A stretch of 64,000 bases of DNA. It comes from Laetmonice hystrix. Its lineage: Eukaryota. Under the pieces are notes generated by a model that ran no database searches, was not told the DNA's origin, and saw only the letters and a program-made list of their open reading frames with translations. The DNA lies in contig OZ249445.1 in the NCBI GenBank assembly GCA_965235115.1, forward strand, positions 1,860,001-1,924,000, read 5' to 3'. Positions 3,804 to 62,117 of the stretch are shown here, in pieces (positions within the stretch are counted from its first letter, which is position 1; every line of letters starts with the position of its first letter). The position numbers and the translations under genes are program-made.

Positions 3804-3840
3804 ATGGTATCCCAAGCAAGGACACTTCTACAGACCTTGG
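3804..3840 (+). CDS. Gfrl: Gfrl-like putative first coding exon (MVSQARTLLQTL, N-terminal part of signal peptide)
   Basis: ACCATGG Kozak context at 3801-3807, followed by a strong phase-1 donor G|GTGAGT at 3841. Joining to exon 2 gives the continuous hydrophobic stretch LLQTLVVLLSVAG. It lies downstream of a CpG-rich, UTR/promoter-like region. The 39-kb distance to exon 2 is the main uncertainty. Confidence 0.65.
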
Positions 3841-3905
3841 GTGAGTAGCTTTTAAAGAAAATGTTGCCGCTGCCAAGTACTTAAGTCATGAGGCCGGCTT
3901 TTCTT

Positions 3906-4081
3906 CTCCCTGTGGCCGGGCCAGCCGGACTAGGTGGTTTACTCCCTGTGGCCGGGCCAGCCGGACTAGGTGGTTTACTCCCTGTGGCCGGGCCGGGCCA
4001 GCCGGACTAGGTTGTTTACTCCCTGTGGCCGGGCCAGCCGGACTAGGTGGTTTACTCCCTGTGGCCGGGCCAGCCGGACTA
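3906..4081. repeat. 36-bp GC-rich minisatellite x~5
   Basis: Unit ctccctgtggccgggccagccggactaggtggttta; starts ~65 bp after the exon 1 donor. Confidence 0.95.
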
Positions 4082-4767
4082 AATGTGTTATGGACAGGTA
4101 CCCTTACCAGCATACCTGATACACATACCTGCTGCTCGCTGTCTCTCAGGGTGCGATTATTGCCAGGTTTGCACGCACACACGTTCAAATTAGCCTCATT
4201 TATGTAGTATGATGGAATACTTCGATGCTACAGTGCACGCAGCGTCAATGGGAAAAGGGAATGATTCTTTTTAATATTGTACACGGGACCGCGCGGGAGG
4301 GTGGGGGAGGGGTGTGATCCGATCATTGTGGAGACGTTTGTTGCCACAGGATTTGCAATATACGGGGAGGATCTGCGGAAGACAAGGAGGCCAAAGCCAT
4401 TAAGTCTCAGCGGACCTGACTGAAAGCCGCAGACTTGATACAGTCTTGTATTTGCATATAGTCCTGTCCATGTAGTCTGTGCGCGAGGGTGGCGAGGAGC
4501 GCAGAGCATGGATTATTGAGCAGGGTTGTCCCCGGCCGACAGAAACTATATTTATTAATGGGAAAGTATTGGTTTGACGGAATCGTCAGCCAGAGTTAGA
4601 GGAATGCCCATACAGAGTGTTGGGAAGGAGCGAGTCATCCCCACAAGGCCCAGCGGGTGGTGCTTGAAGGCAACGACTTTTCCCTTGATCTTGGCAATGT
4701 ATCAACTTGTTGTTCCGCTGGCATGTCTGCCTTGACTGAGCAATCCCCCTCCCCTTTCTTCGCTTCC

Positions 4768-4810
4768 CTCCTCCTCCTCCCCTCCTCCTCCCTCCTCCTC
4801 CTCCTCCTCT
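4768..4810. repeat. (CCT)n microsatellite
   Basis: Direct inspection. Confidence 0.9.
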
Positions 4811-5428
4811 TCCACTTCTCCCTATCCACTCCTCCGCCTCATCCTCGGGCACTACCTCATCTATAAAGCGTTGACGCTGGGACCCCGTTCCAGGACCGAG
4901 GTTACCGTAAGGTTCCCCCCTCCCGAGGTGACACTGAATTCAAAAGGCAGGATCCCATCGAGTTCAAGATTTGTCACACACACTGAATGGGTCAACGTTT
5001 TAAAAATTAATTTTGTTTTCCCATGAAAGATCAAAGCTCCAGACGTACAACAGACGAATTCCAACGAGCTCGTCCCATTCACTCCCCATTGTATCAAAAT
5101 GCCATGGCCTAGAACGCCTGGCTGATTCCTCCTGGTTCATCTCACTCAAACTCTCCAACTGTCACCCTAAAACCCCCAAGAGGAAAGGAATGGGTTTCTG
5201 TTATTGAAGATGAAGAATATGTTAAGTTTCTGCGATTGTCCTCCGCTGACCTGCGGCAGTTTCCATGAGGCTGCTCAGGGGGCGTTATGGGCGGGCCTTG
5301 TAGGATCAATCGGTGGAGAACATGACAGTAAGTTCCGCAGGATGAACCCCCCTACATCCCTGCATGAACACCCGCCCGCCCGCCCGCCGGCTGCATACAT
5401 GATCTCCTAATCTTGATCCTCCACAAGT

Positions 5429-5714
5429 ATCCTTCCTGTGTACTACACAAGTCCTGAATCCTTCCTGTGTACTACACAAGTCCTGAATCCTTCCTGTGTA
5501 CTACACAAGTCATGAATCCTTCATCTGTACTACACAAGTCATGAATCCTTCCTGTGTGCTACACAAGTCATGAATCCTTCCTGTGTACTACACAAGTCAT
5601 GAATCCTTCCTGTGTACTACACAAGTCATGAATCCTTCCTGTGCACTACACAAGTCATGAATCCTTCCTGTGTACTACACAAGTCATGAATCCTTCCTGT
5701 GTACTACACAAGTC
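5429..5714. repeat. 29-bp minisatellite x~10
   Basis: Unit atccttcctgtgtactacacaagtcatga. Confidence 0.96.
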
Positions 5715-6353: not shown

Positions 6354-7770
6354 GATAACAAGGCACTCGTTACTGATGGCACTCCTTACACAGGGCTGGT
6401 TAGTTCTAACTGATAGCAAGGCACTCGTTACTGATGGCACTCCTTACACAGGGCTGGTTAGTTCTAACTGATAGCAAGGCACTCGTTACTGATGGCACTC
6501 CTTACACAGGGCTGGTTAGTTCTAACTGATAGCAAGGCACTCGTTACTGATGGCACTCCTTATACACAGGGCTGGTTAGTTCTAACTGATAGCAAGGCAC
6601 TCGTTACTGATGGCACTCCTTACACAGGGCTGGTTAGTTCTAACTGATAGCAAGGCACTCGTTACTGATGGCACTCCTTACACAGGGCTGGTTAGTTCTA
6701 ACTGATAGCAAGGCACTCGTTACTGATGGCACTCCTTATACACAGGGCTGGTTAGTTCTAACTGATAGCAAGGCACTCGTTACTGATGGCACTCCTTATA
6801 CACAGGGCTGGTTAGTTCTAACTGATAGCAAGGCACTCGTTACTGATGGCACTCCTTACACAGGGCTGGTTAGTTCTAACTGATAGCAAGGCACTCGTTA
6901 CTGATGGCACTCCTTATACACAGGGCTGGTTAGTTCTAACTGATAGCAAGGCACTCGTTACTGATGGCACTCCTTACACAGCTGGTTAGTTCTAACTGAT
7001 AGCAAGGCACTCGTTACTGATGGCACTCCTTATACACAGGGCTGGTTAGTTCTAACTGATAGCAAGGCACTCGTTACTGATGGCACTCCTTACACAGCTG
7101 GTTAGTTCTAACTGATAGCAAGGCACTCGTTACTGATGGCACTCCTTATACACAGGGCTGGTTAGTTCTAACTGATAGCAAGGCACTCGTTACTGATGGC
7201 ACTCCTTACACAGCTGGTTAGTTCTAACTGATAGCAAGGCACTCGTTACTGATGGCACTCCTTATACACAGGGCTGGTTAGTTCTAACTGATAGCAAGGC
7301 ACTCGTTACTGATGGCACTCCTTACACAGGGCTGGTTAGTTCTAACTGATAGCAAGGCACTCGTTACTGATGGCACTCCTTATACACAGGGCTGGTTAGT
7401 TCTAACTGATAGCAAGGCACTCGTTACTGATGGCACTCCTTATACACAGGGCTGGTTAGTTCTAACTGATAGCAAGGCACTCGTTACTGATGGCACTCCT
7501 TATACACAGGGCTGGTTAGTTCTAACTGATAGCAAGGCACTCGTTACTGATGGCACTCCTTATACACAGGGCTAGTTAGTTCTAACTGATAGCAAGGCAC
7601 TCGTTACTGATGGCACTCCTTATACACAGGGCTGGTTAGTTCTAACTGATAGCAAGGCACTCGTTACTGATGGCACTCCTTATACACAGGGCTAGTTAGT
7701 TCTAACTGATAGCAAGGCACTCGTTACTGATGGCACTCCTCACACAGGGCTGGTTAGTTCTAACTGATAG
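6354..7770. repeat. 56/58/60-bp minisatellite x~24
   Basis: Unit tagcaaggcactcgttactgatggcactcctta(ta)caca(gg)gctggttagttctaactga, with length variants. Confidence 0.97.
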
Positions 7771-8116
7771 CTGAGGGGAAATAAGACACATGTATAAACT
7801 GCCCCTTTAATAGGTTATTTCACCCTAGTAATATTCCCCAGGAATCGATGGGAAGGGGTTAGGGCGAGTGGTAGGGTTAGGACAGGGATAGATTTTTAGG
7901 TTCGAATACAATATTTCGTTGGGACATTTCCATGGAGGATCTGCCCTTTAAGAAAAAGGTTCAAAGACGGCGTTTGATGCAGACCGGGTGTTGTTGACGT
8001 AACCTCGACAGACTCTGGCACCAGGGGGTGCATGAAAGACAGTCTGAGGGTAGTGAAGACTGTCGGGGCGAACAGGTGATAACAACGGGGCATGGACTTG
8101 AAGAAGGGTTGGACGG

Positions 8117-8180
8117 TTGGTGGTGGTGGTGGTGGTGGTGGCGGTGGTGTTGGTGGTGAAGGAGGTGGTGGTGGTGGTGT
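8117..8180. repeat. (GGT)n microsatellite
   Basis: Direct inspection; source of the poly-Pro, poly-His and poly-Gly ORFs. Confidence 0.9.
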
Positions 8181-8245
8181 AACCAGGAGCAGGTGCGCGA
8201 CCAGGATGGTCGGCACCACTCTACATGTACAGGAAAGAATATCAT

Positions 8246-9955
8246 GGAGAGTGAGCCGGCTGGTCTGGGTGGTCATGGCCCAGCCTCACGGCAACACCGA
8301 GAGTGACCCGGCTGGTCTGGGTGGTCATGGCCCAGCCTCACGGCAACACCGAGAGTGACCCGGCTGGTCTGGGTGGTCATGGCCCAGCCTCACGGCAGCA
8401 CGGAGAGTGAGCCGGCTGGTCTGGGTGGTCATGGCCCAGCCTCACGGCAACACCGAGAGTGAGCCGGCTGGTCTGGGTGGTCATGGCCCAGCCTCACGGC
8501 AGCACCGAGAGTGAGCCGGCTGGTCTGGGTGGTCATGGCCCAGCCTCATGGCAGCACCGAGAGTGAGCCGGCTGGTCTGGGTGGTCATGGCCCAGCCTCA
8601 CGGCAACACCGAGAGTGACCCGGCTGGTCTGGGTGGTCATGGCCCAGCCTCACGGCAGCACGGAGAGTGAGCCGGCTGGTCTGGGTGGTCATGGCCCAGC
8701 CTCACGGCAGCACCGAGAGTGAGCCGGCTGGTCTGGGTGGTCATGGCCCAGCCTCACGGCAGCACGGAGAGTGAGCCGGCTGGTCTGGGTGGTCATGGCC
8801 CAGCCTCACGGCAGCACCGAGAGTTAGCCGGCTGGTCTGGGTGGTCATGGCCCAGCCTCACGGCAGCACCGAGAGTGAGCCGGCTGGTCTGGGTGGTCAT
8901 GGCCCAGCCTCACGGCAGCACGGAGAGTGAGCCGGCTGGTCTGGGTGGTCATGGCCCAGCCTCACGGCAGCACCGAGAGTGAGCCGGCTGGTCTGGGTGG
9001 TCATGGCCCAGCCTCACGGCAGCACGGAGAGTGAGCCGGCTGGTCTGGGTGGTCATGGCCCAGCCTCACGGCAGCACCAAGAGTGAGCCGGCTGGTCTGG
9101 GTGGTCATGGCCCAGCCTCACGGCAGCACGGAGAGTGAGCCGGCTGGTCTGGGTGGTCATGGCCCAGCCTCACGGCAGCACCGAGAGTAAGCCGGCTGGT
9201 CTGGGTGGTCATGGCCCAGCCTCACGGCAGCACCGAGAGTGAGCCGGCTGGTCTGGGTGGTCATGGCCCAGCCTCACGGCAGCACGGAGAGTGAGCCGGC
9301 TGGTCTGGGTGGTCATGGCCCAGCCTCACGGCAGCACCGAGAGTGAGCCGGCTGGTCTGGGTGGTCATGGCCCAGCCTCACGGCAGCACCGAGAGTGAGC
9401 CGGCTGGTCTGGGTGGTCATGGCCCAGCCTCACGGCAGCACGGAGAGTGAGCCGGCTGGTCTGGGTGGTCATGGCCCAGCCTCACGGCAGCACGGAGAGT
9501 GAGCCGGCTGGTCTGGGTGGTCATGGCCCAGCCTCACGGCAGCACCGAGAGTGAGCCGGCTGGTCTGGGTGGTCATGGCCCAGCCTCACGGCAGCACCGA
9601 GAGTGAGCCGGCTGGTCTGGGTGGTCATGGCCCAGCCTCACGGCAGCACGGAGAGTGAGCCGGCTGGTCTGGGTGGTCATGGCCCAGCCTCACGGCAGCA
9701 CGGAGAGTGGGCCGGCTGGTCTGGGTGGTCATGACCCAGTCTCACGGCAGCACCGAGAGTGAGCCGGCTGGTCTGGGTGGTCATGGCCCAGCCTCACGGC
9801 AGCACCGAGAGTGAGCCGGCTGGTCTGGGCGGTCATGGCCCAGCCTCACGGCAGCACGGAGAGTGAGCCGGCTGGTCTGGGCGGTCATGGCCCAGCCTCA
9901 CGGCAGCACCGAGAGTGAGCCGGCTGGTCTGGGTGGTCATGGCCCAGCCTCACGG
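8246..9955. repeat. 52-bp GC-rich minisatellite x~33
   Basis: Unit gagagtgagccggctggtctgggtggtcatggcccagcctcacggcagcacc. Confidence 0.97.
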
Positions 9956-10631
9956 CCATACTGCGTTTATTCCGGTGATAATACACTTTGTTATATTGCA
10001 CATATCTTTCCTGAAGGGTATCAAAGGTCAAATTAATCAGGTCATGGAAATGGATGACTTGGCTTAGAATTTACTGTTACTGCAGCTGCTTGAACAAGCC
10101 AGTAATGGGTGGGTTCCGGCTTCGTTCATTCAAACATCTGAATGTGTGTAGATAATCTACCCAGCAATGACAGCAGCATTGCAACATCTGAACATTTTGA
10201 GTCTTGAGATAAACCGCCTAGCTGATCTGTATTATCGGTGATGTAAAATCTAGTTTTAAACAATGGTAATGTGACAGTTGAATCCGTTTTAAATGGTTGT
10301 GGTGAGAGACTGGGAACGCTGTGTGTCGTAACCTGAGGGTAGGGGAACCGGACGGATGGAACGCCGCGTCTAGCTTCGGGACGTCATCCTCGAAACGATT
10401 TAAAGAAGATTTAGAAATTATTTCACAAAAAACTAATCCGGCGTTGAAGGAGTGCCGCCAATTAGGTTTGCAGCTGCTGCAAGGCGGAGACAGTAGAAAC
10501 ACTCGCCTGTGGTGGACCCTGTATGCCGGCCCCTCAGTGATTACTGAAACATTCTTGGGGTTGGCGGAGCGGAGGACTGTGGTGGTCAGAGGTACCTGGT
10601 CAGAATTCCGTATGAGTCGGCAACAGTTGTA

Positions 10632-21043: not shown

Positions 21044-23305
21044 AACCTACTCGGCCACCAATGGATGATACAATACGCTCTGTGTGATCCCAGCTAGAGC
21101 GAACTTACTCGGCCACCAATAGATGATACAATACGCTCTGTGTGATCCCAGCTAGAGCGAACTTACTCGGCCACCAATGGATGATACAATACGCTCTGTG
21201 TGATCCCAGCTAGAGCGAACGTACTCGGCCACCAATGGATGATACAATACGCTCTGTGTGATCCCAGCTAGAGCGAACCTACTCGACCACCAATGAATGA
21301 TACAATACGCTCTGTGTGATCAGCTAGAGCGAACTTACTCGGCCACCAATAGATGATACAATACGCTCTGTGTGATCCCAGCTAGAGCGAGGTTACTCGG
21401 CCACCAATAGATGATACAATACGCTCTGTGTGATCCCAGCTAGAGCGAGGTTACTCGACCACCAATGGATGATACAATACGTTCTGTGTGATCCCAGCTA
21501 GAGCGAACTTACTCGACCACCAATGGATGATACAATACGCTCTGTGTGATCCCAGCTAGAGCGAACTTACTCGGCCACCAATGGATGATACAATACGCTC
21601 TGTGTGATCCCAGCTAGAGCGAACTTACTCGGCCACCAATGAATGATACAATACGCTCTGTGTGACCCTAGCTAGAGCGAACTTACTCGGCCACCAATGA
21701 ATGATACAATACGCTCTGTGTGATCCCAGCTAGAGCGAACTTACTCGGCCACCCATGGATGATACAATACGCTCTGTGTGATCCTAGCTAGAGCGAACTT
21801 ACTCGGCCACCAATGAATGATACAATACGCTCTGTGTGATCCTAGCTAGAGCGAACTTACTCGACCACCAATGAATGATACAATACGCTCTGTGTGATCC
21901 CAGCTAGAGCGAACTTACTCGGCCACCAATGGATGATACAATACGTTCTGTGTGATCCTAGCTAGAGCGAACTTACTCGGCCACCAATGAATGATACAAT
22001 ACGCTCTGTGTGATCCTAGCTAGAGCGAACTTACTCGGCCACCCATGGATGATACAATACGCTCTGTGTGATCCTAGCTAGAGCGAACTTACTCGGCCAC
22101 CCATGGATGATACAATACGTTCTGTGTGATCCTAGCTAGAGCGAACTTACTCGACCACCAATGGATGATACAATACGCTCTGTGTGATCCCAGCTAGAGC
22201 GAACTTACTCGGCCACCAATGGATGATACAATACGCTCTGTGTGATCCCAGCTAGAGCGAACTTACTCGACCACCAATGAATGATACAATACGCTCTGTG
22301 TGATCAGCTAGAGCGAACTTACTCGACCACCAATGGATGATACAATACGCTCTGTGTGATCCCAGCTAGAGCGAACTTACTCGGCCACCAATGGATGATA
22401 CAATACGCTCTGTGTGATCCCAGCTAGAGCGAACTTACTCGACCACCAATGAATGATACAATACGCTCTGTGTGATCCCAGCTAGAGCGAACTTACTCGG
22501 CCACCAATGGATGATACAATACGCTCTGTGTGATCAGCTAGAGCGAACTTACTCGGCCACCCATGGATGATACAATACGCTCTGTGTGATCCCAGCTAGA
22601 GCGAGGTTACTCGGCCACCAATGAATGATACAATACGCTCTGTGTGATCCCAGCTAGAGCGAGGTTACTCGGCCACCAATAGATGATACAATACGCTCTG
22701 TGTGATCCCAGCTAGAGCGAGGTTACTCGGCCACCAATAGATGATACAATACGCTCTGTGTGATCCTAGCTAGAGCGAACTTACTCGGCCACCAATGAAT
22801 GATACAATACGCTCTGTGTGATCCTAGCTAGAGCGAACTTACTCGGCCACCAATGAATGATACAATACGATCTGTGTGATCCTAGCTAGAGCGAACTTAC
22901 TCGGCCACCAATGGATGATACAATACGCTCTGTGTGATCCCAGCTAGAGCGAACTTACTCGGCCACCCATGGATGATACAATACGCTCTGTGTGATCCTA
23001 GCTAGAGCGAACTTACTCGACCACCAATGGATGATACAATACGCTCTGTGTGATCCCAGCTAGAGCGAACTTACTCGGCCACCAATGGATGATACAATAC
23101 GCTCTGTGTGATCCTAGCTAGAGCGAACTTACTCGGCCACCAATGGATGATACAATACGCTCTGTGTGATCCGAGCTAGAGCGAACTTACTCGACCACCA
23201 ATGAATGATACAATACGCTCTGTGTGATCCCAGCTAGAGCGAACTTACTCGACCACCAATGGATGATACAATACGCTCTGTGTGATCTTAGCTAGAGCGA
23301 GGTTA
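21044..23305. repeat. 58-bp minisatellite x~39 (longest array)
   Basis: Unit tactcggccaccaatggatgatacaatacgctctgtgtgatcccagctagagcgaact. Confidence 0.98.
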
Positions 23306-23537: not shown

Positions 23538-23752
23538 NNNNNNNNNNNNNNNNNNNNNNNNNNNNNNNNNNNNNNNNNNNNNNNNNNNNNNNNNNNNNNN
23601 NNNNNNNNNNNNNNNNNNNNNNNNNNNNNNNNNNNNNNNNNNNNNNNNNNNNNNNNNNNNNNNNNNNNNNNNNNNNNNNNNNNNNNNNNNNNNNNNNNNN
23701 NNNNNNNNNNNNNNNNNNNNNNNNNNNNNNNNNNNNNNNNNNNNNNNNNNNN
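23538..23752. other. Assembly gap (215 N)
   Basis: Run of n. Confidence 1.
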
Positions 23753-24062: not shown

Positions 24063-24296
24063 CTGTATACTGGGACTGTGAACGACCAGACAGGCATCCA
24101 GTCTGGGGACATACCCCTCATCAAGTACATGTACTTAGTATCCCTGTATACTGGGACTGTGAACGACCAGACAGGCATCCAGTCTGGGGACATACCCCTC
24201 ATCAAGTACTTGGTATCCCTGTATACTGGGACTCTGAACGACCAGACAGGCACCCAGCCAGGGGACATACCCCTCATCAAGTACTTGGTATCCCTG
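24063..24296. repeat. 76-82-bp tandem repeat x3
   Basis: Unit ctgtatactgggactgtgaacgaccagacaggcatccagtctggggacatacccctcatcaagtacttggtatcc. Confidence 0.93.
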
Positions 24297-24795
24297 AGAC
24301 GAACGGAATGGTTACAGAGTGGATCACCGTACCAGTATCGGAATCATCAAGTATGTTGTATCAAGTAATTATGTACTGGAAGACATCACCCATCCCTATA
24401 TGACGGCAAAGATCAAATCTGGATTTATCGCATCAACACCTGATTCTAGTTTTAAAAATCATATAGGAAACAAGAAAAAATACAGGAAGAATTCAACCGC
24501 GAAGAACTGCCCTCTGATCTCATAAAACACCACCTGTCAGGGTTGCAATGCCTGCTTGGCACGACACAGAAGATAGAAGATAAAAACCCATAAATACCGT
24601 CTTTGTTATAGAGTCATGTATAATGGAGGTTGCTTCCTACACAATAGAGCCCGTGTGACATATTAGTTGGTGCCGTTGGGCCACAGGCGATATGAGTACG
24701 TTAACATATTGACACGTTCTGTTCGTAAAAACTAAGACAAAGGCGTCCACAGGTGCCAGAATACCTCCTGCCGTCGACTGTGTAACAATGGGGGC

Positions 24796-25807
24796 TGAGA
24801 TATACGGTCAGGAGTTACTGGTGAGATAAACGGTCAGGAGTTACTGGTGAGATAAACGGTCAGGAGTTACTGGTGAGATAAACGGTCAGGAGTTACTGGT
24901 GAGATAAACGGTCAGGAGTTACTGGTGAGATAAACGGTCAGGAGTTACTGGTGAGATAAACGGTCAGGAGTTACTGGTGAGATATACGGTCAGGAGTTAC
25001 TGGTGAGATAAACGGTCAAGAGTTACTGGTGAGATAAACGGTCAGGAGTTACTGGTGAGATATACGGTCAGGAGTTACTGGTGAGATAAACGGTCAGGAG
25101 TTACTGGTGAGATATACGGTCGGGAGTTACTGGTGAGATCAACGGCCGGGAGTTACTGGTGATATAAACGGTCAGGAGTTACTGGTGAGATATACGGTCA
25201 GGAGTTACTGGTGAGATCAACGGTCGGGAGTTACTGGTGAGATAAACGGTCGGGAGTTACTGGTGAGATAAACGGTCAGGAGTTACTGGTGAGGTAAACG
25301 GTCAGGAGTTACTGGTGAGATAAACGGGCAGGAGTTACTGGTGACATCAACGGTCAGGAGTTACTGGTGAGATAAACGGTCAGGAGTTACTGGTGAGATA
25401 AACGGTCAGGAGTTACTGGTGAGATAAACGGTCAGGAGTTACTGGTGAGATAAACGGCCAGGAGTTACTGGTGAGATCAACGGTCAGGAGTTACTGGTGA
25501 GATCAACGGTCAGGAGTTACTGGTGAGGTAAACGGTCAGGAGTTACTGGTGAGATAAACGGTCAGGAGTTACTGGTGACATCAACGGTCAGGAGTTACTG
25601 GTGAGATCAACGGTCAGGAGTTACTGGTGAGATCAACGGTCAGGAGTTACTGGTGAGATAAACGGTCAGGAGTTACTGGTGAGATAAACGGTCAGGAGTT
25701 ACTGGTGAGATAAACGGTCAGGAGTTACTGGTGAGATAAACGGTCAGAAGTTACTGGTGAGATATACGGTCAGGAGTTACTGGTGAGATAAACAGTTAGG
25801 AGTTACT
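24796..25807. repeat. 26-bp minisatellite x~39
   Basis: Unit gagataaacggtcaggagttactggt. Confidence 0.97.
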
Positions 25808-26147
25808 GTGCCAGAGTCCTGGATATACGGCTGGATAGCACGGACCTGGCATGGAACTATCAGAACTAAAGCCGTATCTGGTCGGAGGATCAGGACTAAT
25901 TCCTTATGATGATTTTTCTCCAGAGCACAGGTGTTGGTGAAAATCTATCCGGGATAGAGGAGCTTAATGCCAGCGGGGAAGATCAGATCCATTGTGAATG
26001 GCCCCTGCTTTTGTGTCCGATCTACAATGGGGGTAGAACAGTAGAACGAAGATACTCTCTCCGGAACCCTTCAGGCGAAATCACGTGTCTTATTTCCTTC
26101 CCATTTATTACTTTCTGTTACATGCATATGGAGTCAGAGATTTGATA

Positions 26148-42312: not shown

Positions 42313-42841
42313 AGGGGCATGCTATGAAACAGGTTTTTTTTTTATTTCCGGCAATTATCCAACATGACCGTGTACTAGGGATTCAAGTAAATAATCCTAC
42401 CACAGCATTTTGTCCTCTGACGTGTTTTCGCTGCGTATGCAGCACAAGTAGGTTCTATACGACCAAACCTATAGATTTCTCCCGATAGCACATCTCCCGC
42501 CATTATTTGGTAGACAACCCTCCCGTCAACCCGTGTAATCGCATACTGTGTCACATCCTGTGTGTGCACTCTCTGCATGTGCTTAGTCAGTGCTTTGCTT
42601 AGTTGTAAACAATTCAGCATTGGCACTCGATCGCCCGGCATCAGAATGCCACCCAAAAAATATTTTACGAAATCGGCAGAGAAGCGGGCAAGGGAGCTTA
42701 ATAAACTTCGATTTCTCACGCAAAATGAAACTGATAAGTCTGTCTTTGTTTACCAAGCAATTTTAATGAAGGATCTCTTTATGAAAACAGCAAAAGTTCT
42801 ATGAAATACCGATTTTTAACGTTTCCTCATAATATGCCCCT
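42313..42841. mobile_element. Non-autonomous DNA transposon with TTAA target duplication (Kolobok-like)
   Basis: TTAA|aggggcat ... atgcccct|TTAA. RR-starting termini with a TTAA TSD are typical of Kolobok elements. Confidence 0.7.
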
Positions 42842-42869: not shown

Positions 42870-43034
42870 TGGTTCTGCTCTCCGTCGCCGGGGTTACAAT
42901 CGGGATCAATCACGTGACCAGCTCAGCTACAGCTTATCCACCAATCAGCTGTTCTGACGGGCGGATAGCGTGTTCCATGGATTCCCACTGCCACGTTATG
43001 CTGACTGCCATTCCAAGAATATGTAATACCTCCG
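42870..43034 (+). CDS. Gfrl: Gfrl-like exon 2: end of signal peptide and first half of GFRa domain 1 (4 Cys)
   Basis: Acceptor ttttccatctctcttacag| and donor G|gtaagg; 165 nt, phase 1-1. Encodes VLLSVAGVTIG...ISCSDGRIACSMDSHCHVMLTAIPRICNTS. Confidence 0.9.
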
Positions 43035-43349: not shown

Positions 43350-43825
43350 TTCAAAACAGCATGTCAAAAAATCCAATATCAAAGGAAAACCCTTATTTCA
43401 GTTTATGTTCAATGTGGCCTCCATGTTCCTTTACGACTAAAGGAAGCCGTTTCTTCCAAGCAGAAATGCTTGTACGTATTTCTTCCACCCATATCTTCTC
43501 CCATGACATAATTATCCTGTCCTTTAATGCCTGTTCGGTCAATTTGTCTCTCAGTCCCCGGTAAACTTTCTCCTTCAGAGAGTTCCATATGACATAATCC
43601 ATGAACCTGATGTAGGTCACTTTGGACAGTTTTGATATCGGATTTTTTGACATGCTGTTTTGAATTTGACAATACTCGCATAATTTCAGTCAGATCTTTT
43701 AGTTCTTTTGCGGACTTGTTGATGATACCCTAAGGTTATTGTGTGAAAATTTTCAATGAAATCGGGTTATCTATCACTGAGAAAATACTTGTCAAAAAGC
43801 GGTTCACTTTTTCTGGGACACCCGA
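43350..43825 (-). mobile_element. Tc1/mariner (maT/DD37D-like) internally deleted derivative
   Basis: Minus-strand TIR TA|TCGGGTGTCCCAGAAAAAGTGAACCGC at 43825. The N-terminal stub MRVLSNSKQHVKKSDIK is fused to the transposase C-terminus MDYVIWNSLKEKVY...SAWKKRLPLVVKEHGGHIEH*. The catalytic core is absent. Confidence 0.85.
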
Positions 43826-43971
43826 TATCACCGGCGATGTACACATGTATGTGCTACCTTTATGGCAGCATTCAATCATACCAAACAAGAAGCTCCAGCC
43901 ACTGCCTAATACTCAATGTTGTAGAGAATATGCGTCCTGCTTTTGATGAGAGTATCATTAAAAGGCGCAAA

Positions 43972-45428
43972 ACTGGTGTAGGGGTGGGCTTCCAACCAAT
44001 GTCTCCACAGGGCTTTCGGCTCGGTCTGTCACCCTCAACGTGGTGTTGTGTACTGGTACGGTACTGCTGTAGGGGTGGGCTTCCAACCAATGTCTCCACA
44101 GGGCTTTCGGCTCGGTCTGTCACCCTCAACGTGGTGTTGTGTACTGGTACGGTACTGGTGTAGGGGTGGGCTTCCAACCAATGTCTCCACAGGGCTTTCG
44201 GCTCGGTCTGTCACCCTCAACGTGGTGTTGTGTACTGGTACGGTACTGCTGTAGGGGTGGGCTTCCAACCAATGTCTCCACAGGGCTTTCGGCTCGGTCT
44301 GTCACCCTCAACGTGGTGTTGTGTACTGGTACGGTACTGGTGTAGGGGTGGGCTTCCAACCAATGTCTCCACAGAGCTTTCGGCTCGGTCTGTCACCCTC
44401 AACGTGGTGTTGTGTACTGGTACGGTACTGCTGTAGGGGTGGGCTTCCAACCAATGTCTCCACAGGGCTTTCGGCTCGGTCTGTCACCCTCAACGTGGTG
44501 TTGTGTACTGATACGGTACTGCTGTAGGGGTGGGCTTCCAACCAATGTCTCCACAGGGCTTTCGGCTCGGTCTGTCACCCTCAACGTGGTGTTGTGTACT
44601 GGTACGGTACTGCTGTAGGGGTGGGCTTCCAACCAATGTCTCCACAGGGCTTTCGGCTCGGTCTGTCACCCTCAACGTGGTGTTGTGTACTGGTACGGTA
44701 CTGGTGTAGGGGTGGGCTTCCAACCAATGTCTCCACAGGGCTTTCGGCTCGGTCTGTCACCCTCAACGTGGTGTTGTGTACTGGTACGGTACTGCTGTAG
44801 GGGTGGGCTTCCAACCAATGTCTCCACAGAGCTTTCGGCTCGGTCTGTCACCCTCAACGTGGTGTTGTGTACTGGTACGGTACTGCTGTAGGGGTGGGCT
44901 TCCAACCAATGTCTCCACAGGGCTTTCGGCTCGGTCTGTCACCCTCAACGTGGTGTTGTGTACTGGTACGGTACTGCTGTAGGGGTGGGCTTCCAACCAA
45001 TGTCTCCACAGGGCTTTCGGCTCGGTCTGTCACCCTCAACGTGGTGTTGTGTACTGGTACGGTACTGCTGTAGGGGTGGGCTTCCAACCAATGTCTCCAC
45101 AGGGCTTTCGGCTCGGTCTGCCACCCTCAACGTGGTGTTGTGTACTGGTACGGTACTGCTGTAGGGGTGGGCTTCCAACCAATGTCTCCACAGGGCTTTC
45201 GGCTCGGTCTGTCACCCTCAACGTGGTGTTGTGTACTGGTACGCTCCTGCTGTAGGGGTGGGCTTCCAACCAATGTCTCCACAGGGCTTTCGGCTCGGTC
45301 TGTCACCCTCAACGTGGTGTTGTGTACTGGTACGGTACTGCTGTAGGGGTGGGCTTCCAACCAATGTCTCCACAGGGCTTTCGGCTCGGTCTGTCACCCT
45401 CAACATAGTGGGACGTACTGGTACGGTA
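43972..45428. repeat. 91-bp minisatellite x16
   Basis: Unit tgtaggggtgggcttccaaccaatgtctccacagggctttcggctcggtctgtcaccctcaacgtggtgttgtgtactggtacggtactgc; generates the serial 68- and 77-aa ORFs. Confidence 0.98.
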
Positions 45429-46070
45429 CCCACAAATTCCGCTGACACACAAAAGAAAGGGCAGAAGAAAAGAGCCCCTGGAATGTTAGCCTACTGTTTC
45501 TTCCCGATACTCCATACTCCAACCCACATCTTGAATCCAAGTATAGAAGTAAACGGCTCCCAATGGGAGGCTAATGAGCTGGCGTGATAGCATGCTATCC
45601 TCCGAAAACGGCCTGTAGTTAGCCTGGAGTTAGCCACACTGTCGTTTCACGGTGGGTAACAGGTTTAATGATGTCGACGAGCGCCCCCACACGGCGGCCA
45701 GGAGAGGTGTACCCATCCTAACTGAGCCACGTGTTTTAGTGTCGTTTTACTACCTCATATCGTATTCTCCGATATAACTGACAACTGTGGACCACGCTGG
45801 TTCCTCTTCATCAACCCGATTATGTACAAAGGTTACTTCTTTTAGGGGCGTTGTGATGGTTGGTGACACCGCACGGCAAACGTAGAAAATGACGCCCCCA
45901 TCTCAGGAACTAAGCATGGCAGAAGGAACCCTTGATCAGTCAATCTTTAACAAAGAGAATCAATTCTGTTCAATATATTTTTATATTTCTTCTAAACTTT
46001 TTCAATGTAGATTAGTCAGATGATTAGTCGTCGTTTATTGCCATTTTACGCTCTCCCAAACGCGGCGCTA

Positions 46071-47526
46071 ACGGCACGTTACCCGTCTGTGGCCGCCCGT
46101 ACGACACTGGGCTCACGGCACGTTACCCGTCTGTGGCCGCCAGTACGACACTGGGCTCACGGCACGTTACCCGTCTCTGGCCGCCAGTACGACACTGGGC
46201 TCACGGCACGTTACCCGTCTCTGGCCGCCAGTACGACACTGGGCTCACGGCACGTTACCCGTCTCTGGCCGCCAGTACGACACTGGGCTCACGGCACGTT
46301 ACCCGTCTCTGGCCGCCAGTACGACACTGGGCTCACGGCACGTTACCCGTCTCTGGCCGCCAGTACGACACTGGGCTCACGGCACGTTACCCGTCTCTGG
46401 CCGCCAGTACGACACTGGGCTCACGGCACGTTACCCGTCTCTGGTCGCCAGTACGACACTCACGGCACGTTACCCGTCTCTGGCCGCCAGTACGACACTG
46501 GGCTCACGGCACGTTACCCGTCTCTGGCCGCCAGTACGACACTCACGGCACGTTACCCGTCTCTGGTCGCCAGTACGACACTGGGCTCACGGCACGTTAC
46601 CCGTCTCTGGCCGCCAGTACGACACTGGGCTCACGGCACGTTACCCGTCTCTGGCCGCCAGTACGACACTGGGCTCACGGCACGTTACCCGTCTCTGGCC
46701 GCCAGTACGACACTCACGGCACGTTACCCGTCTCTGGTCGCCAGTACGACACTCACGGCACGTTACCCGTCTCTGGCCGCCAGTACGACACTGGGCTCAC
46801 GGCACGTTACCCGTCTCTGGCCGCCAGTACGACACTGGGCTCACGGCACGTTACCCGTCTCTGGCCGCCAGTACGACACTGGGCTCACGGCACGTTACCC
46901 GTCTCTGGTCGCCAGTACGACACTGGGCTCACGGCACGTTACCCGTCTCTGGTCGCCAGTACGACACTGGGCTCACGGCACGTTACCCGTCTCTGGTCGC
47001 CAGTACGACGCTCACGGCACGTTACCCGTCTCTGGCCGCCAGTACGACGCTCACGGCACGTTACCCGTCTCTGGCCGCCAGTACGACACTCACGGCACGT
47101 TACCCGTCTCTGGCCGCCAGTACGACACTCACGGCACGTTACCCGTCTCTGGCCGCCAGTACGACACTCACGGCACGTTACCCGTCTCTGGCCGCCAGTA
47201 CGACACTCACGGCACGTTACCCGTCTCTGGCCGCCAGTACGACACTCACGGCACGTTACCCGTCTCTGGCCGCCAGTACGACACTCACGGCACGTTACCC
47301 GTCTCTGGCCGCCAGTACGACACTCACGGCACGTTACCCGTCTCTGGCCGCCAGTACGACACTCACGGCACGTTACCCGTCTCTGGCCGCCAGTACGACA
47401 CTCACGGCACGTTACCCGTCTCTGGCCGCCAGTACGACACTCACGGCACGTTACCCGTCTCTGGCCGCCAGTACGACACTGGGCTCACGGCACGTTACCC
47501 GTCTCTGGCCGCCAGTACAACACTGG
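46071..47526. repeat. 44/39-bp two-variant minisatellite x~35
   Basis: Unit ctcacggcacgttacccgtctctggccgccagtacgaca(ctggg); the long form dominates the 5' part and the short form the 3' part. Confidence 0.97.
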
Positions 47527-48469
47527 TTGCGTGCTCCTCCATTGACAGCCTTTCTCCAGTTGTGGCCTTTCTTCCAGTCACATAGTCGGCCGGCTTGTAT
47601 TTGCGCCATGTGGGTCCATGTTTACATGTACTGCAGGACGGACGGACATCATAAAACAGACTCCCCAGGCAGCTGAGAAATCAACTCACACCGTAATAAA
47701 ACCCATTTCTGTGGATGCAACTCCTTATTCGTGAATATCTCACTACATCTACAATCAGTCACTGAATTAGTAATGGTATTGTTTTCGGCCGGTAACATAA
47801 TGATGGCTATGTTGCGATCAGATGACCTCATTGAAGGGTTGACTTCGTCATCACAATCATACAGTTCAATATCTATCACAATGTGAGACAAAATCCATGT
47901 TTTGACTGCAAAACATGGAGAGACAGTTGCCATGTTCAATACACCAGTGCAAAACATCGAGAGACAGTTGCCATGTTCAATACACCAGTGCAAAACAAAT
48001 GGCAAAGAAAACGTTGGTAAAAGGAGACAATTGGCCTTATTGAGCAGGACGCCGCTACAGACTTTTGCCTAATATGCATCACTGTAAAGGAATATAGAGT
48101 AACGAAAGAAAAGTCAACTCTTCTAAACAAATATACATGGCACTTAAATTTCTCCAGTATAATATATCATCAGATCGCCGAGGGTCTCCACGGGTATGGT
48201 CACAACAAATTGAAGGGGTTTCAGTATCTTTCAAGACTGATTTCACGATAATGTAATGACGAGACCGAGGCCAGTTCATGTATTCAACACGTTATATAGC
48301 GAACCTGGGAACGTTTTCTATGTATCCAAAGCCGTGTGATCCGCACGGCTCGGGCGTCCTCAGGTGGACACCCACCTCGAAGTAAGAGCTGAAGAGCCAT
48401 AAAGAAATCCTAGTCCCAAACTGAATTTACTATCCCTACTTTCGTGCGTAGGTTACCATGGTGAGAGCA

Positions 48470-50315: not shown

Positions 50316-50492
50316 GAGCGAAGTGTACCCCCAAAGGCCGCCTCCAGTGCCGAGCAGTGCAGAAATGGCTACAATTGACTCCGCTATTCCAGAGCTGTCA
50401 CTGTCAGGTTCCCGCCGAGGAACGAGCTGCGTGTCTACAATTACGACGGTTGGTCTACACCGAGTACTGCAGCCACACTACGCCGGCCCCGA
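50316..50492 (+). CDS. Gfrl: Gfrl-like exon 3: second half of GFRa domain 1 (6 Cys)
   Basis: Acceptor gggtattgcag| and donor A|gtaagt; 177 nt, phase 1-1. Encodes AKCTPKGRLQCRAVQKWLQLTPLFQSCHCQVPAEERAACLQLRRLVYTEYCSHTTPAP and completes the 10-Cys domain begun in exon 2. Confidence 0.9.
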
Positions 50493-54910: not shown

Positions 54911-57084
54911 TAGAATCTGTTTGTCTTAGGTTTGAGGTCATCAGACCAAATTGGTCAAATACTCCCACTAAACATGACGACTTAGATTAAAGTATTAGTT
55001 CTATCCTAGTGTGAGATGCACTTAATAATGTTGCATGACTTTAAGACACTCCGGTAGTCAATACTTATACACCACTGTATAGAGTACAGGTGATCGTACG
55101 TGACCCTCATTCGGAGAGATCCCACCTAAACCCCCAGTACATAGGGTCGAGAATATACCTCGGATAACGTTACTAAGACAGCCGCAAGTGGCGATGGTGC
55201 TCAAACAATAAACCATTACGCCTGAATGATAATTGTAAATTATGCAGATGCTTCCAGCATGCATCCATGGCTGGCACAAGGGACGCAATCAGCCGCGGAT
55301 AGCTTGTCATTTTCTGGCCAATGTTTTATACATAAATGAGGCACTAAATCGCAGGCACTGATCTATGACAATATCAAACAATAGCAATAATTGCACCTCC
55401 CCTTGCCATATACTTCAGCAACAGACCTTGTTGTCATGATGAGCTATCACGTTTCTCCCTGTCTTGCCGCTGCTATGTCAATTGACGTATTGGGTTGATG
55501 CCACTACCGTTTGCCATTGACATGTTAATGTGCGGTTTTTCAAATGAAGCATCCAGTAGGGAGTTGATGTCCATGTGTGCCTTGATTAAATTGACAGCTC
55601 TCACGCACATTTTACTAGCTGCCATTTTTCAATACCTCTCAAGATGAAAGGTGGCCGCGCATGCCTAAACGACTCATCCGTTTGTCGTATCTCCCCACCA
55701 AACTTCTGCCGTAAAACTGATCGTCAAGTCCAAAACGAGATGGGCCGCGGTGCAGGGAGAAATCAACTCAACTCCAACAAATCATACTTCCACTTAATAT
55801 AGCCGTAGTTTTTTAGAGGGGGGGGGGGGGTTGCGAGAAGATGTAGACTTTAGATGTCGACTTTAGCACGGCAAGTCGTTTAGAGCCCACTTTATCTTAC
55901 GGGCAATGTTCAGGCGGCGGTTATTGTAAGTAAAATAACCGTGTTATTTTCTAAACGCATAAAACGCAGCATCACCAGTGTGTGGTTCGATGACAGAGAA
56001 ACCGGAGAAGAGTACCGAGACTTTCCTCCTGACATTCCAGAAGATCAATAGACAGAACGACAGGGGGAGGGACAGGAGGGAGGGACAGATCAAATAGTAC
56101 TTACACAATTAGACGTACGCAGCCACCCTCTTCGGCTTTCACAACAAGTGTAAGGGTGCACATATATACATGTATGCAGTATGCATATTTTAATGCATGC
56201 ATTTATGTTTTGTAGGCATTGATGTGCACACGTATGCAAACCTACGTACGTGTAGTACATACAACTCCGTATATATGCTTATATCCACATATATTCTATA
56301 CATATATCTGGAATTCGTCACCCTCAATCTGAGGCAATCGACGTGCGAGACATTCTGTGCTGTACATGCCGTTTCTTGTAACCTGATCATCTTTACACGC
56401 TCAGATTGTGAAGGTGCTTCCATTCAGGTAGAAGTATAAAGCGAGTGGCATCCACTGATATATATTCCGACAGAGGCACGTACCGATTTCATATAATATG
56501 TATAGTGTCTGACGTTGGCACTTACTGCAGACAGAAACAACTGCTCTGTACCACAGCCTGTTGCAGGCCCCGACCCGTCTCAACCAGGTTATCTGCCCTC
56601 CCTCCTGGAAACCCCGTCCGCTCGCACTTCGCTGCTGGAAAATCTCCTGACAGATTATTAGTATGGACTGTCAGGCTTGGAAAATCACCCTAATTGTCAT
56701 TAGTTATTCTTCTGAGGCATAGCCTTACTCTGGAGGAGGCGATGCTCCCGCACTAGGAGCAGCTTCAGAGCACAACTTTCATCAAAGTAAATCTAGTTAA
56801 AAGATCTCTTCCTGCTCTGATTAGCTTTTAATATGGCCAGTCGGCCTTGTTTTGTCTGATCAATTAGGTGATTTTCTAGATACGTCAGTCTGCCGGGACG
56901 ATATGGCTTATATTTCTAGGGGCGGTAGTCCCGGTGGATATTACTGGGTGCTGCATACAGAGAGCCTATGTTATAATGGTTATATTCTTATGTTGCACAG
57001 CGCACATGTCGAGGGATCGGCCCGTGCCAACCCTTCCCTCAAACAGCCTCTCCCCCTATGTGCGTTCACGCATGCGGCAGACAG

Positions 57085-57250
57085 TTTCCGGTCGTATCGT
57101 TAAAAACATGGATGAAGAAGAAGATAAAATCTCGTGTATAGGCATGCGCAAACGCTGTTTGCTGGACCGGACGTGCCGCGGGACGCTGACGGACTTCCGG
57201 CGACTATGTCGGGAAAACAAGAAGAAGGAAGAATGCGTCACCACCGACAG
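57085..57250 (+). CDS. Gfrl: Gfrl-like exon 4: linker and first half of GFRa domain 2
   Basis: Encodes SGRIVKNMDEEEDKISCIGMRKRCLLDRTCRGTLTDFRRLCRENKKKEECVTTD. The donor AG|gttgga is phase 2 and matches exon 5. The phase-1 acceptor cagacag| at 57084 was chosen to fit exon 3. In-frame alternative AGs at 57046 and 57080 make the 5' edge uncertain. Confidence 0.85.
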
Positions 57251-57659: not shown

Positions 57660-57796
57660 GGACGGATGTTTTAAGATGATTGAAAGGCTTCGAGAATCTG
57701 GAATATTTGATTGTCACTGTAACCACGTGAAGAAATATCAAACACGCAGGAAATGTGACCGAATACAGTATCGGCTGGCCAACAACACTTGCCTTG
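57660..57796 (+). CDS. Gfrl: Gfrl-like exon 5: second half of GFRa domain 2
   Basis: Acceptor attttctttatcttgtcag| and donor G|gtaagt; phase 2-1. Encodes DGCFKMIERLRESGIFDCHCNHVKKYQTRRKCDRIQYRLANNTCL (CxC and terminal NxC as in GFRa domains). Confidence 0.92.
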
Positions 57797-58859: not shown

Positions 58860-60300
58860 AACAGCACTTTGGTCCTCAACCATACCTCTCTGGTGCACCT
58901 GCTAACTGGAACGCTGCTCACTGGAAGGTTTATATGTCGACCATTCACCACTCATGTTCCATACAACATTTACCTCCGCCCGGAAACCAAGCCAAGGTAT
59001 CATCCACAATATCAGGGTGACGCAGTACCACGTTTAAATCGATCGATCCTACACGGTGGCCGTATAAAGTGACAAAGATGTCATACTCTAAGCCATCTCG
59101 AGTGTCTATTTGGGAACTTTCCCCGCGTTTCGCCATCTCTAATTCTATTGCCGTGAGGGCAATGATACCCTGGCTAATCTACCGGCACCACCGGCAGCAG
59201 ACTCAGGTCCCGTGTCACCCCGTACACAGAGGTCCCGTACCCTGTGTGGTAGGGGAAACGGTAAGGATGTTAGGTATATCAAGGGTGCATGGAACTGTCA
59301 TCTACACTAGGGAAACAATACACGTTTGTCAGACAGGGCGTCTTTCTGTACAGCTGAGCATGATTCGGACCGGTACACATACGGAGACATGCGAATTACC
59401 CTTTCAGCCAATATATTCAGGACCTTGGTAACCAAAATCCTCAACAAGGTAGATCTACATGCCAATAATTGTTGCCTGCCCAAGGTGCTGAAAGCTTTAG
59501 ATTGGATCTCTCAACAAAATGTGTTCTTGGAGAAAACAACTCCATTTCGGTATGGCTTACCATGCCCCCTGACCCCTCCAACAATCCCAGCCTGCTGTTC
59601 AGATGACAACACACTTCCAGCCACCCCTCAAATAAAGCACCATTTCTACTTGGCCCAGGAGGATGTACCTCTGCTGGCAGGTCTCAGGTCATAACGACCT
59701 TTCGTTGTTTTACGCTGGTGAATGGACCTTTTCAGATTCACAGCATCAGATAGCTTGCCATGTAGAGAACTGTTATCGTAGCTACTCCACTACTCTCCGT
59801 TTGTTGAGTCATAAACGGAAGCAAAAACATTCCCAGGGACATGGGTGTCTATAATTCTCCCAGATCGAACGCCTTTCATAATTTGGCCTGTGGTTAAATG
59901 CTGACCAGATCAAGGCCAACCTCCGTCGTATCGCTTATTGATCTTTACCTTAACTAACAAACCTCATCAACCCCATACACAACGAGTAGGTCGATAAAAG
60001 CATTATCGAACAGATAACCAGCCGACTTCATCAAATGGAAATCATCCTCAATGATTTCTCCCCGACTTTACGTCCTAACGTCGGCCATACTTAACTCCAG
60101 GAGCAGCCATGCTGATCACGTGGCCAGAACGTGTTGTCAGACCAGCACTACAGACCAGCAAACATTCTGATTGGCTGCCTCCCTCGAAGCGCCCCCAAGT
60201 GGTGTGAGTCGACTTTTCTGATCCCAAAGCTAATCAGACCCATCACAGCGATCGGTGGAGTCGGGTTGACATCTGACCTAACATCACTCGCCCACACCCC
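58860..60300 (+). mobile_element. Possible decayed LINE (APE end plus RT start)
   Basis: VDHSPLMF (SDHSP-like) near 58935; CCLPKVLKAL...FLEKTTPFRYG near 59470-59555; LIPKLIRPITAIG near 60215. All matches are degenerate. Confidence 0.35.
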
Positions 60301-61320
60301 CAGAATCACGTCCACGCTCGCCCTACCAGCGTTTGTTCACAAAATGCCAATAGTGCGCATCAAACAGGTTAATTTGAAGCTTCTGCACATGCAACCTTTG
60401 ACTCCATAGCATGTAGCCCTGGCATCGTGTAGTGGAAACGGTCATTACCTGCACAGATCCACTGGTCACCTGAGCTTGTGGACATACTGTATCATGCGAA
60501 GTGTAGAGACTTGGTGCAAGTCACATAGCAAGCCCCATCAAATAGTTATGTGTATTCTAGCGGTCGGCTGACTACACAGTTGGTCGACAGCTATAGGGCC
60601 GGAAGGTAGCCCCCCAGCGGACTGATCTATCACTGCAAACATCTAAGTAACGTTCCCTGTAATATTGGATTGCATCCTGTATTAAAGTGGCGTTTAGGCT
60701 AGCCTTCAATGAGAGTGGTTCCTATATTGTAAATGTTGCGAAGGGTTAGCTGGTGACCTAACAGAATTTATTTTCCATGCGTGGAACCGTATGTGCCACG
60801 ACTTACCCTGAGGGTTGGCCACACTCTGACATACATCTATTGGTTGTTTTCAACCCGTCATCAGAACAAAGTTATGTATAGACACAGCTTGCTCTGCACT
60901 GGACACACTAGGTATCCGTGACATTCTTTAGATATATAAAAAAAATAGTTGGTCAACGGTAATCAGGCCTGTTCCGTACAGTTCCAGAAAAATCGGTCCT
61001 CAGCTGCTGCTATGATCGGCCTGCATTTTGTCATTTCCATCGATATCGAATGTCGGCAAACTGTTACAGAATTAGGGCAATCGATGGTGCCGCCGATAAC
61101 CTTTGTAGCATCACATATTCACACGTCGGACTTGTTGGCCCAGATTTGGCTAGGTGGGATATGCACTGTGGTCGGACCAACGTACGCTCCACGCGGGGTG
61201 CTCCACTGACAGACAGCCTAGAATATCTTATAAAGCAGCCAACATTAAATCAATATCCCCGCTCCCAGACACTTCTACCAGTTACAAAGTTGAAACTTCT
61301 TCTAGTAGCTTCAAGCTTAA

Positions 61321-61761
61321 AGGCAGGGTAAACACCCACGGCAAATAAGGTTTCGTAGACCAAATGGAACACCAGCATTTACCTCAGGGCAATAAATGAC
61401 ACAATTACATTGTCTGAATGAAGTAATTAACGTGTAGCTGCCCGATGTGTGACGTAACTGGTTCTGCTTGTGTGTTCAACACCTCGGACGTTTACAAACG
61501 TTGGGACTCCAAACATCGTGTAGACAAGGTCTGTGAGCAGAGTAACACGTAATGTTACGCAATACGCTGCGGTGTGCAGCATTCGGCTCTGATGGACACA
61601 CAAGAAGGTCAAGGTCAGAACCAGCGGCGTCATACATCAGGCGGTTACACGTTAATTACTTCATTCTGACAACGTAATTGTGTCATTTATTGCCCTCAGT
61701 TAAATGCTGGTGTTTCATTTGGTCTATGAAACCTTATTTGCCGTGGGTGTTTACCCTGCTT
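61321..61761. mobile_element. Foldback MITE with ~120-bp TIRs and TTAA target duplication (Kolobok-like)
   Basis: TTAA|aggcagggtaaacacccacggcaaataagg... and ...ccttatttgccgtgggtgtttaccctgctt|TTAA; the arms pair over roughly 120 bp. Confidence 0.88.
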
Positions 61762-62021
61762 TTAAGGATTGCTTTCTGTTATATACGTAATCCGAATCAA
61801 TAGAATCTATTAACCCATAAAGTTAAGGAATAGCTTCCCCCTCTGTCTCGATCCTTGTCTGTTTCTCTATCTGTCTCCCTCTATCCCTATCGCAATATCT
61901 CTGAGTATAGGCTACTTTTAAAACGACATCTTCATTGTAGGTCGTTTCTCGCGATACCTCTAAATGGTAAGTGCTCGACCATCATACAATAACACATACA
62001 GATGTGATTTCTCCCTTTCAG

Positions 62022-62117
62022 TGGCGGTTCCATATCTGGTACACTCTAGCAAAGCAATGGCCACGTCTTACGAGGATCTTCTTGATATCGTCTCCTCAGT
62101 GTCGACCCCAGCACCAG
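62022..62117 (+). CDS. Gfrl: Gfrl-like probable exon 6: Ser/Thr/Pro-containing inter-domain linker
   Basis: Acceptor gtgatttctccctttcag| and donor CAG|gtcaga; 96 nt, phase 1-1, open. Encodes AVPYLVHSSKAMATSYEDLLDIVSSVSTPAP. Support is splice signals and phase only; there is no homology motif. Confidence 0.6.

Follow-up and report, generated by a model that had tools for sequence, protein, structure and literature searches.

The stretch of DNA analysed here, referred to as the window, comprises 64,000 nucleotides of Laetmonice hystrix (G000:C11:1860001-1924000, + strand) in an assembly of 627 Mb and 35 contigs. It contains six small exons, the first of them putative, which encode the N-terminal part of a receptor of the GFRalpha/GAS1 family. 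Very probably they form the 5' half of a GFRalpha-like (Gfrl-type) gene that an annelid-like animal carries in single copy and in apparently intact form. Past the window, eight further in-phase exons were found (G000:C11:1924697-1962159), giving a gene with about 14 coding exons and a length of at least 59 kb, or 98 kb should exon 1 be correct. Exon limits were set by tblastn with annelid homologues, searched against the window and 40 kb of downstream sequence, together with an exhaustive search for phase-compatible GT/AG pairs. The features are collected in Table 1, where plain numbers are window positions and the prefixes L005, L006 and L010 mark stretches lying downstream of it.

Table 1. 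Exons of the Gfrl-type gene and other features in and beyond the window
Feature	Position	Strand	Content or evidence
Exon 1 (putative), 37 bp	3804-3840	+	Start codon and signal-peptide n-region (MVSQARTLLQTL plus 1 nt), both putative; phase 1
Assembly gap, 215 N	23538-23752	none	Sole N run of the window; within putative intron 1
Exon 2, 165 bp	42870-43034	+	Signal-peptide h-region VLLSVAGVTIG; first half of D0, Cys 1-4, IPRIC
Exon 3, 177 bp	50316-50492	+	Second half of D0, Cys 5-10, LFQSCHC; start of D0-D1 linker
Exon 4, 250 bp	57001-57250	+	D0-D1 linker; first half of D1, Cys 1-5
Exon 5, 137 bp	57660-57796	+	Second half of D1, Cys 6-10, FDCHC motif
Exon 6, 96 bp	62022-62117	+	D1-D2 linker (VAVPYLVHSSKAMATSYEDLLDIVSSVSTPAPG)
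Local segmental duplication	62086-62600	+	Last 32 nt of exon 6, its donor and a 74-bp minisatellite
D2 and start of D3	L005:697-1018	+	tblastn and phase search
Remainder of D3	L005:2148-2356	+	tblastn and phase search
Linker, 62 bp	L006:4604-4665	+	Encodes DCLRNLGHKIPSYMSMPAAVR; in phase with both neighbours
TILa-like	L006:7122-7242	+	TILa, 27.2 bits (Pfam, L006:7122-7241)
DUF7921, second half	L010:2559-2663	+	18.2 bits on second half of profile (Pfam, L010:2561-2662)
Conserved C-terminal region	L010:3873-4003	+	tblastn and phase search
Conserved C-terminal region	L010:5636-5728	+	tblastn and phase search
C-terminal tail, TAA end	L010:7914-8159	+	tblastn and phase search

Within the window every exon junction is in phase and canonical (GT-AG). 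An earlier examination of the letters and their open reading frames, here called the sequence-only reading, had described six exons of 37-177 bp between 3804 and 62117; the sizes and coordinates were recovered (with acceptor 57085 for exon 4), as were the in-phase joins, with exon 1 and the acceptor of exon 4 staying unproven. The IPRIC and LFQSCHC motifs lie at 43010-43024 and 50384-50404, both on the + strand. At exon 2 the acceptor (...ttttccatctctcttacag/T) is excellent, and the donor is CCG/gtaagg. Exon 3 (acceptor tattgcag/G, donor CGA/gtaagt) is in phase 1 at both ends and matches, in alignment, the first domains of proteins from Owenia, Tubulanus, Lytechinus and Ptychodera. Exon 4 matches residues 128-181 of the Capitella protein with 54% identity (tblastn, E 2.5e-11) and, scanned singly, gives 19 bits against positions 1-32 of the Pfam GDNF profile. 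It can be joined to exon 5, which matches Capitella residues 195-245 (tblastn, E 2.5e-6), by only one phase-compatible junction, CAG/gttgga to cttgtcag/G. The next junction, TTG/gtaagt to ccctttcag/T, leads to exon 6, corresponding by tblastn to Capitella residues 246-289 and to residues 36-61 of homologue P0004, and the donor of exon 6 (CAG/gtcaga) joins the D2 exon at L005:697, restoring a conserved G-S-T-C.

The complete model has a coding sequence of 2151 nt in which all introns are GT-AG and the only stop is the terminal one (C11:1962157-1962159), and it encodes 716 aa, or 688 aa with the short form of exon 4. The four domains D0, D1, D2 and D3 occupy residues 38-119, 170-254, 289-371 and 379-463 of the longer form. 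They are followed by a C-terminal extension of 250 aa, which includes a cysteine-rich TILa/DUF7921 module, about 190 aa of conserved sequence and a hydrophobic tail at the C-terminus. The linker exon peptide DCLRNLGHKIPSYMSMPAAVR matches the siboglinid linker CRSRMAENIPAYMDVPTVIR. Strong hydrophobicity (Kyte-Doolittle, 11-residue window) occurs at the two ends only, reaching 2.6 at the N-terminus (residues 13-23) and 3.1 at the C-terminus (residues 702-712); the N-terminal peak depends on putative exon 1. The C-terminal tail fits a predicted glycosylphosphatidylinositol (GPI) anchor signal. Thus, the D2 and D3 exons and the GPI-like tail that the sequence-only reading had proposed to look for downstream were indeed found past the window.

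Each of the four domains, of 82, 85, 83 and 85 residues in the spliced model, contains exactly 10 cysteines (Cys), in agreement with the GFRalpha/GAS1 superfamily, whose domains have about 80-90 residues and the cysteine spacing C..C..C..C..C..C..CxC..C..C. The first two, D0 and D1, lie in the window and had been called complete 10-Cys domains from the letters, a description that is borne out by their homology, which exceeds that of shuffled sequences. With phmmer, D0 scored 25.9 bits against the first domains of homologues, compared with a mean of 6.6 and a maximum of 18.1 for 200 shuffles with the Cys positions fixed, and D1 scored 45.1 against a shuffle maximum of 17.1. The spliced D0-D1 segment is colinear with the Capitella protein (94 bits), and also with those of Tubulanus (52 bits) and Owenia (about 40 bits). 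The best match of D0 is the first domain of four-domain homologues. D1-D3 of vertebrate GFRalpha1 and GFRalpha4 are colinear with residues 159-436 of the present protein and match its D1-D3, so that domain 1 is the extra N-terminal domain; the proposed assignment of the two window domains as D0 and D1 was therefore correct. A MAFFT alignment of the exon pieces with full-length homologues placed the D0/D1 pieces on the paralogous D3 and was left out of the domain assignment.

Membership in the GFRalpha/GAS1 family, claimed beforehand from the cysteine pattern, was confirmed by profile searches. A six-frame scan of the whole genome with the Pfam GDNF/GAS1 model (PF02351, gathering score 22 bits) gave four places. 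The first is in the window, at 57135-57242 (20.1 bits, profile positions 1-34); the second, at C11:1924705-1924935, begins 705 bp past the 3' end of the window and contains the whole domain in a single exon (45.8 bits); the third is on contig C1 (27.5 bits); and the fourth, on contig C7, is at chance level. Scanned as an exon, D2 (L005:699-1016) scored 45.6 bits, above the cut-off. The exon with the first half of D1 is the only Pfam GDNF match in the window (19-20 bits), and its score below 22 bits is expected of a half domain. In the PDB, D2 and the start of D3 matched GFRalpha1 best (4ux8, E 3.9e-15), followed by GFRAL (5vz4) and GFRalpha2, with the cysteines all in register; GAS1 was absent from the PDB matches of the D2 exon.

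The genome contains one copy of the D2 exon. Compared with 1.84 billion representative proteins, this exon gave 235 matches at E<=1e-3, the top ones being 59-70% identical; among named organisms, Ridgeia, Lamellibrachia and Capitella came closest. Named members of the nearest clusters include the annelids Ridgeia, Lamellibrachia, Capitella, Owenia and Helobdella, and the nemertean Tubulanus, in agreement with the invertebrate origin assumed earlier. Other named members of these clusters are echinoderms, the hemichordate Ptychodera, amphioxus, nematodes, a nematomorph, a millipede, and vertebrate GFRalpha1 and GFRalpha4. The full model aligns with the Capitella protein ELT91888.1 over 706 colinear columns with 37% identity (E 2.7e-156). 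Homologues from Tubulanus, Owenia, Lamellibrachia and Gordionus also carry DUF7921, as does the 1339-aa protein P0148, and the C-terminal extension can be aligned with proteins from nematodes, a millipede and sea urchin. The protein collections searched yielded no protein of this species, the queries being the Capitella protein, an alignment of homologues and exons, and the D2 exon; these searches returned only the Capitella protein or a 69%-identical ENA fragment.

A quick maximum-likelihood tree of D2-D3, rooted on the GAS1 of this same genome, grouped the protein in a protostome clade of annelid, nemertean, millipede and nematode members (Shimodaira-Hasegawa-like approximate likelihood ratio test, SH-aLRT, 88), nearest to the siboglinids and Capitella. 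The clade is apart from the sturgeon GFRalpha4 clade, from a second long-branch clade and from the ambulacrarian branches; sturgeon GFRalpha4 was the sole named vertebrate in the tree, which included no fly sequence and no named GFRalpha1. Together with the four domains, the TILa/DUF7921 extension and the hydrophobic tail, a layout like that described for Drosophila Gfrl (PMC3527400) and found also in nematode, millipede and sea-urchin proteins, this position upholds the earlier call of Gfrl-type orthology. It has to be considered whether the gene is instead a GAS1 orthologue, or a member of one of the vertebrate GFRalpha1-4/GFRAL subfamilies, since the Pfam GDNF/GAS1 domain is common to all of these and some ambulacrarian relatives are publicly annotated as "GFRalpha-1-like", "GFRalpha-2" or "GFRalpha-4-like". 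This is extremely improbable: the GAS1 orthologue is a separate, intronless gene of 298 aa on contig C1, the protein described here has four domains and a 250-aa extension that vertebrate GFRalpha proteins lack, and the tree places it outside the sturgeon GFRalpha4 clade. A best match to GAS1 or to another family, which the sequence-only reading had named as a result that would change its call, was not obtained.

Several points weigh against the reading of the locus as an invertebrate-type Gfrl gene encoding a surface receptor. When each D0 half-domain exon was scanned singly, the Pfam GDNF model gave no match, a miss that is to be expected for half domains. Both the GPI anchor and the cleavage of the signal peptide are predictions from simple hydropathy rules. 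The exon 4 acceptor has two candidates, 57001 and 57085, the latter giving a 166-bp exon (57085-57250) that is also phase-compatible; the pyrimidine tract is better at 57001, and the choice between them is unproven, being guided by splice-site features. The exon at 3804-3840 is a plausible but putative first exon, identified from sequence features alone. No RNA run with the exons was found, and the only runs that contain their sequence are three DNA runs of one sample. A genome scan for Ret with the Pfam models RET_CLD1/3/4 gave cadherins or sub-threshold matches only, and in Drosophila a 2012 study found that Ret phosphorylation is not mediated by Gfrl (PMC3527400). The Gfrl-type reading is retained as very probable, with three of its parts, the first exon, the intactness of the gene and the function of its product, treated separately below.

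An upstream coding exon is required, as the frame of exon 2 contains no ATG downstream of the stop at 42830-42832. Putative exon 1 has a perfect start context (ACCATGG), a strong donor (TGG/gtgagt) and a phase that suits the 2-nt lead of exon 2. Spliced together, the two would give MVSQAR / TLLQTLVVLLSVAGVTIG / INHVTSSA, a plausible signal peptide with textbook n-, h- and c-regions. With regard to the signal peptide proposed earlier, the predicted h-region lies in exon 2, and the peptide as read is plausible on condition that the putative start exon belongs to the gene. It is also quite possible, if somewhat short of probable, that the model is right from exon 2 on and that the true first coding exon lies elsewhere upstream, perhaps within the assembly gap or close to it, or on a piece of scaffold that was joined wrongly. 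The 63 kb upstream of exon 2 contain 1706 ATG-to-GT candidates in phase 1, six of them with a GTRAGT donor, and two of the six also have a Kozak context, about the number expected by chance. Several of the gene's confirmed donors are themselves weaker than GTRAGT, which leaves room for weaker first-exon candidates. The gap lies between exons 1 and 2, at 19.7 kb from the former and 19.1 kb from the latter, overlapping no exon and bordered on either side by tandem arrays (21044-23300 and 24063-25808), so the linkage of the two exons depends on the scaffold. The first intron would also be long (39 kb), but other introns of this gene reach 22 to 25 kb.

The gene would lack a working product if its exons, although real, belonged to a decaying or silent pseudogene. 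Apart from the RNA result given above, two observations point in that direction. The intronic stretch 5' of the TILa exon (L006:7078-7121), translated as VVC-stop-LTNDSSHIIQ, is similar to the Tubulanus coding sequence VCDRMLQSDRSPIVR and resembles a relic of an older, longer exon; position L006:7090 within it is heterozygous A/G in DNA contigs of the same sample (L006:6800-7500), and both alleles, TAA and TGA, are stops. In addition, a partial copy of exon 6 occurs in a downstream intron. Damage between D3 and the TILa exon, by a nonsense mutation or a frameshift, was considered and dropped, as the linker motif is supplied by the separate, in-phase 62-bp exon at L006:4604-4665, which lies 2.5 kb upstream; the stop-bearing stretch is consequently simply intron, and the reading frame of the gene continues uninterrupted. 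In both alleles this stretch also fits a branch-point-like CTRAC motif. Furthermore, the 13 homology-confirmed exons (2-14) are all open, every intron of the 14-exon model is GT-AG and in phase, all 40 of the 40 domain cysteines are kept, and identity to the Capitella protein extends over the whole length. A pseudogene is accordingly highly unlikely, and the gene is regarded as apparently intact.

The rest of the window (G+C content 46%, observed/expected CpG ratio 0.79) is rich in repeats. Twenty-two minisatellite arrays are spread over 1337-62518, with units of 24-129 bp, up to 39 copies and 82-99% identity; examples are found at 6354-7771, 8247-9956, 21044-23300, 24796-25808, 33610-35484, 43972-45429 and 46067-47526, and arrays scoring at least 200 cover 26% of the window. 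Open reading frames in these regions were rejected as genes, the one of 521 aa at 46020-47585 being a translated 44-bp tandem array, and the many of 60-135 aa at 43756-45587 also being translations of arrays. Seven further intronic frames of 130-237 aa matched no Pfam family. The segmental duplication at the end of exon 6, which includes a tandem array at 62147-62518, has its second copy at L005:2688-3058, in the intron after the D3 exon, with 95% identity, and a genome-wide search found these two copies only. The duplicate leaves a decoy pseudo-exon end, "IVSSVSTPAPG/gt". A repeat origin of exon 6 was rejected, its 3' end having a single other genomic copy 4.6 kb downstream.

Vertebrate GFRalpha proteins bind ligands of the GDNF family and present them to Ret. 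By family resemblance, the protein encoded here is predicted to act as a co-receptor at the cell surface. Its C-terminal hydrophobic tail would be replaced by a GPI anchor, and the receptor would be exposed on the outer face of the cell membrane, where, as in other members of the family, it might bind, chiefly via D2, a TGF-beta superfamily ligand with a cystine knot and present it to a partner, either the Ret tyrosine kinase, an adhesion molecule of the NCAM/FasII type, or both. Drosophila Gfrl contains D0-D3, has a GPI anchor and binds heparin, and it interacts with FasII/NCAM (PMC3527400). The sequence-only reading had spoken of an unknown ligand, which needs qualifying for invertebrates: in Drosophila, the TGF-beta protein Maverick, a candidate ligand, reportedly acts via Ret together with Gfrl (Myers et al. 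2018; Hoyer et al. 2018, according to the passage citing them in PMC13232516).

Two other loci of the same genome relate to this system. The GAS1 orthologue (L002:1207-2103, minus strand, at about 15.525-15.526 Mb of G000:C1) encodes a protein with a signal peptide, a pair of GDNF/GAS1 domains, a segment rich in His and a hydrophobic tail, and its best PDB match is 7rhq (E 2e-15). The sole RET_CLD1 match above the cut-off was rejected as Ret, being an ordinary cadherin; it comes from a 615-aa frame at L012:736-2583 (about 2.419 Mb of G000:C4) whose product has five cadherin repeats and, N-terminally, a FAT4-like domain.

The gene call is sound and, as the family was already recognised in invertebrates, it is no surprise. 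Invertebrate GFR-like proteins had been found in genome searches before 2012, the year in which the first invertebrate complementary DNA, that of Drosophila Gfrl, was characterised, and orthologues of several annelids are already in public databases. What is provided here is a complete and checkable gene model for a genome that seems to lack a public annotation of this receptor, including small N-terminal exons that the automated models of related species missed, and of use for comparing how the Ret/GFRalpha/GDNF system arose. A broader proposal can be offered only tentatively and is rather unlikely as a whole: that this is the first complete lophotrochozoan Gfrl from D0 to GPI signal; that a four-domain GFRalpha-like receptor including a TILa/DUF7921 module already existed in the bilaterian ancestor, D0 and the module having been lost in vertebrates; and that the annelid receptor works with a TGF-beta ligand resembling Maverick, whether or not Ret takes part. 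If true, the inference of the ancestral receptor would draw also on the sea-urchin, nemertean, nematode and millipede proteins, and the animal would offer a slowly evolving model for the pre-vertebrate origin of GDNF signalling.

Among known systems, the closest are annelid proteins. One is the hypothetical Capitella teleta protein CAPTEDRAFT_228689 (ELT91888.1; GDNF/GAS1 domain-containing), which belongs to the same family and agrees in domain order, in the TILa/DUF7921 module and in the conserved region near the tail. The others come from the siboglinids Lamellibrachia satsuma (KAI0236672.1) and Ridgeia piscesae (KAK2188081.1); they show 45% identity across 417-469 common columns, rising to 53% within D2-D3, and they too contain the TILa/DUF7921 module and the conserved tail region. 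The public models differ from the present one at their N-terminal ends: that of Capitella is without the first half of D0, and the siboglinid ones start at or just before D2, whereas the model described here runs from D0 to the stop. Such shortening, which the sequence-only reading had anticipated for automated annotation, is probably due to small D0/D1 exons located far upstream, as in this gene.

Ecdysozoa were represented in the comparisons by the millipede protein and several nematode proteins, and Drosophila Gfrl was compared by its published description only (PMC3527400). It shares with the present protein D0-D3 and a long stretch following D3, and its N-terminal signal sequence and hydrophobic C-terminal GPI signal have predicted counterparts here, but it is larger (predicted GPI site G1008) and has Thr-rich, mucin-like stretches. 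Vertebrate GFRalpha1 (4ux8, 3fub, 6q2n) and GFRAL (5vz4, 6q2j) match D2 and the start of D3 with E values of 4e-15 to 9e-14. The vertebrate proteins, at 24-32% identity, have three domains, without D0 and without the TILa/DUF7921 extension. The layout of the vertebrate GFRalpha1-4/GFRAL group, with three domains (two in mammalian GFRalpha4) and a short stalk after D3, is thus different from that found here. GAS1 (7rhq) has the Pfam domain and a GPI-type tail in common with this protein, but contains two domains encoded by an intronless gene, in contrast with the four domains and multiple exons of the Laetmonice receptor.

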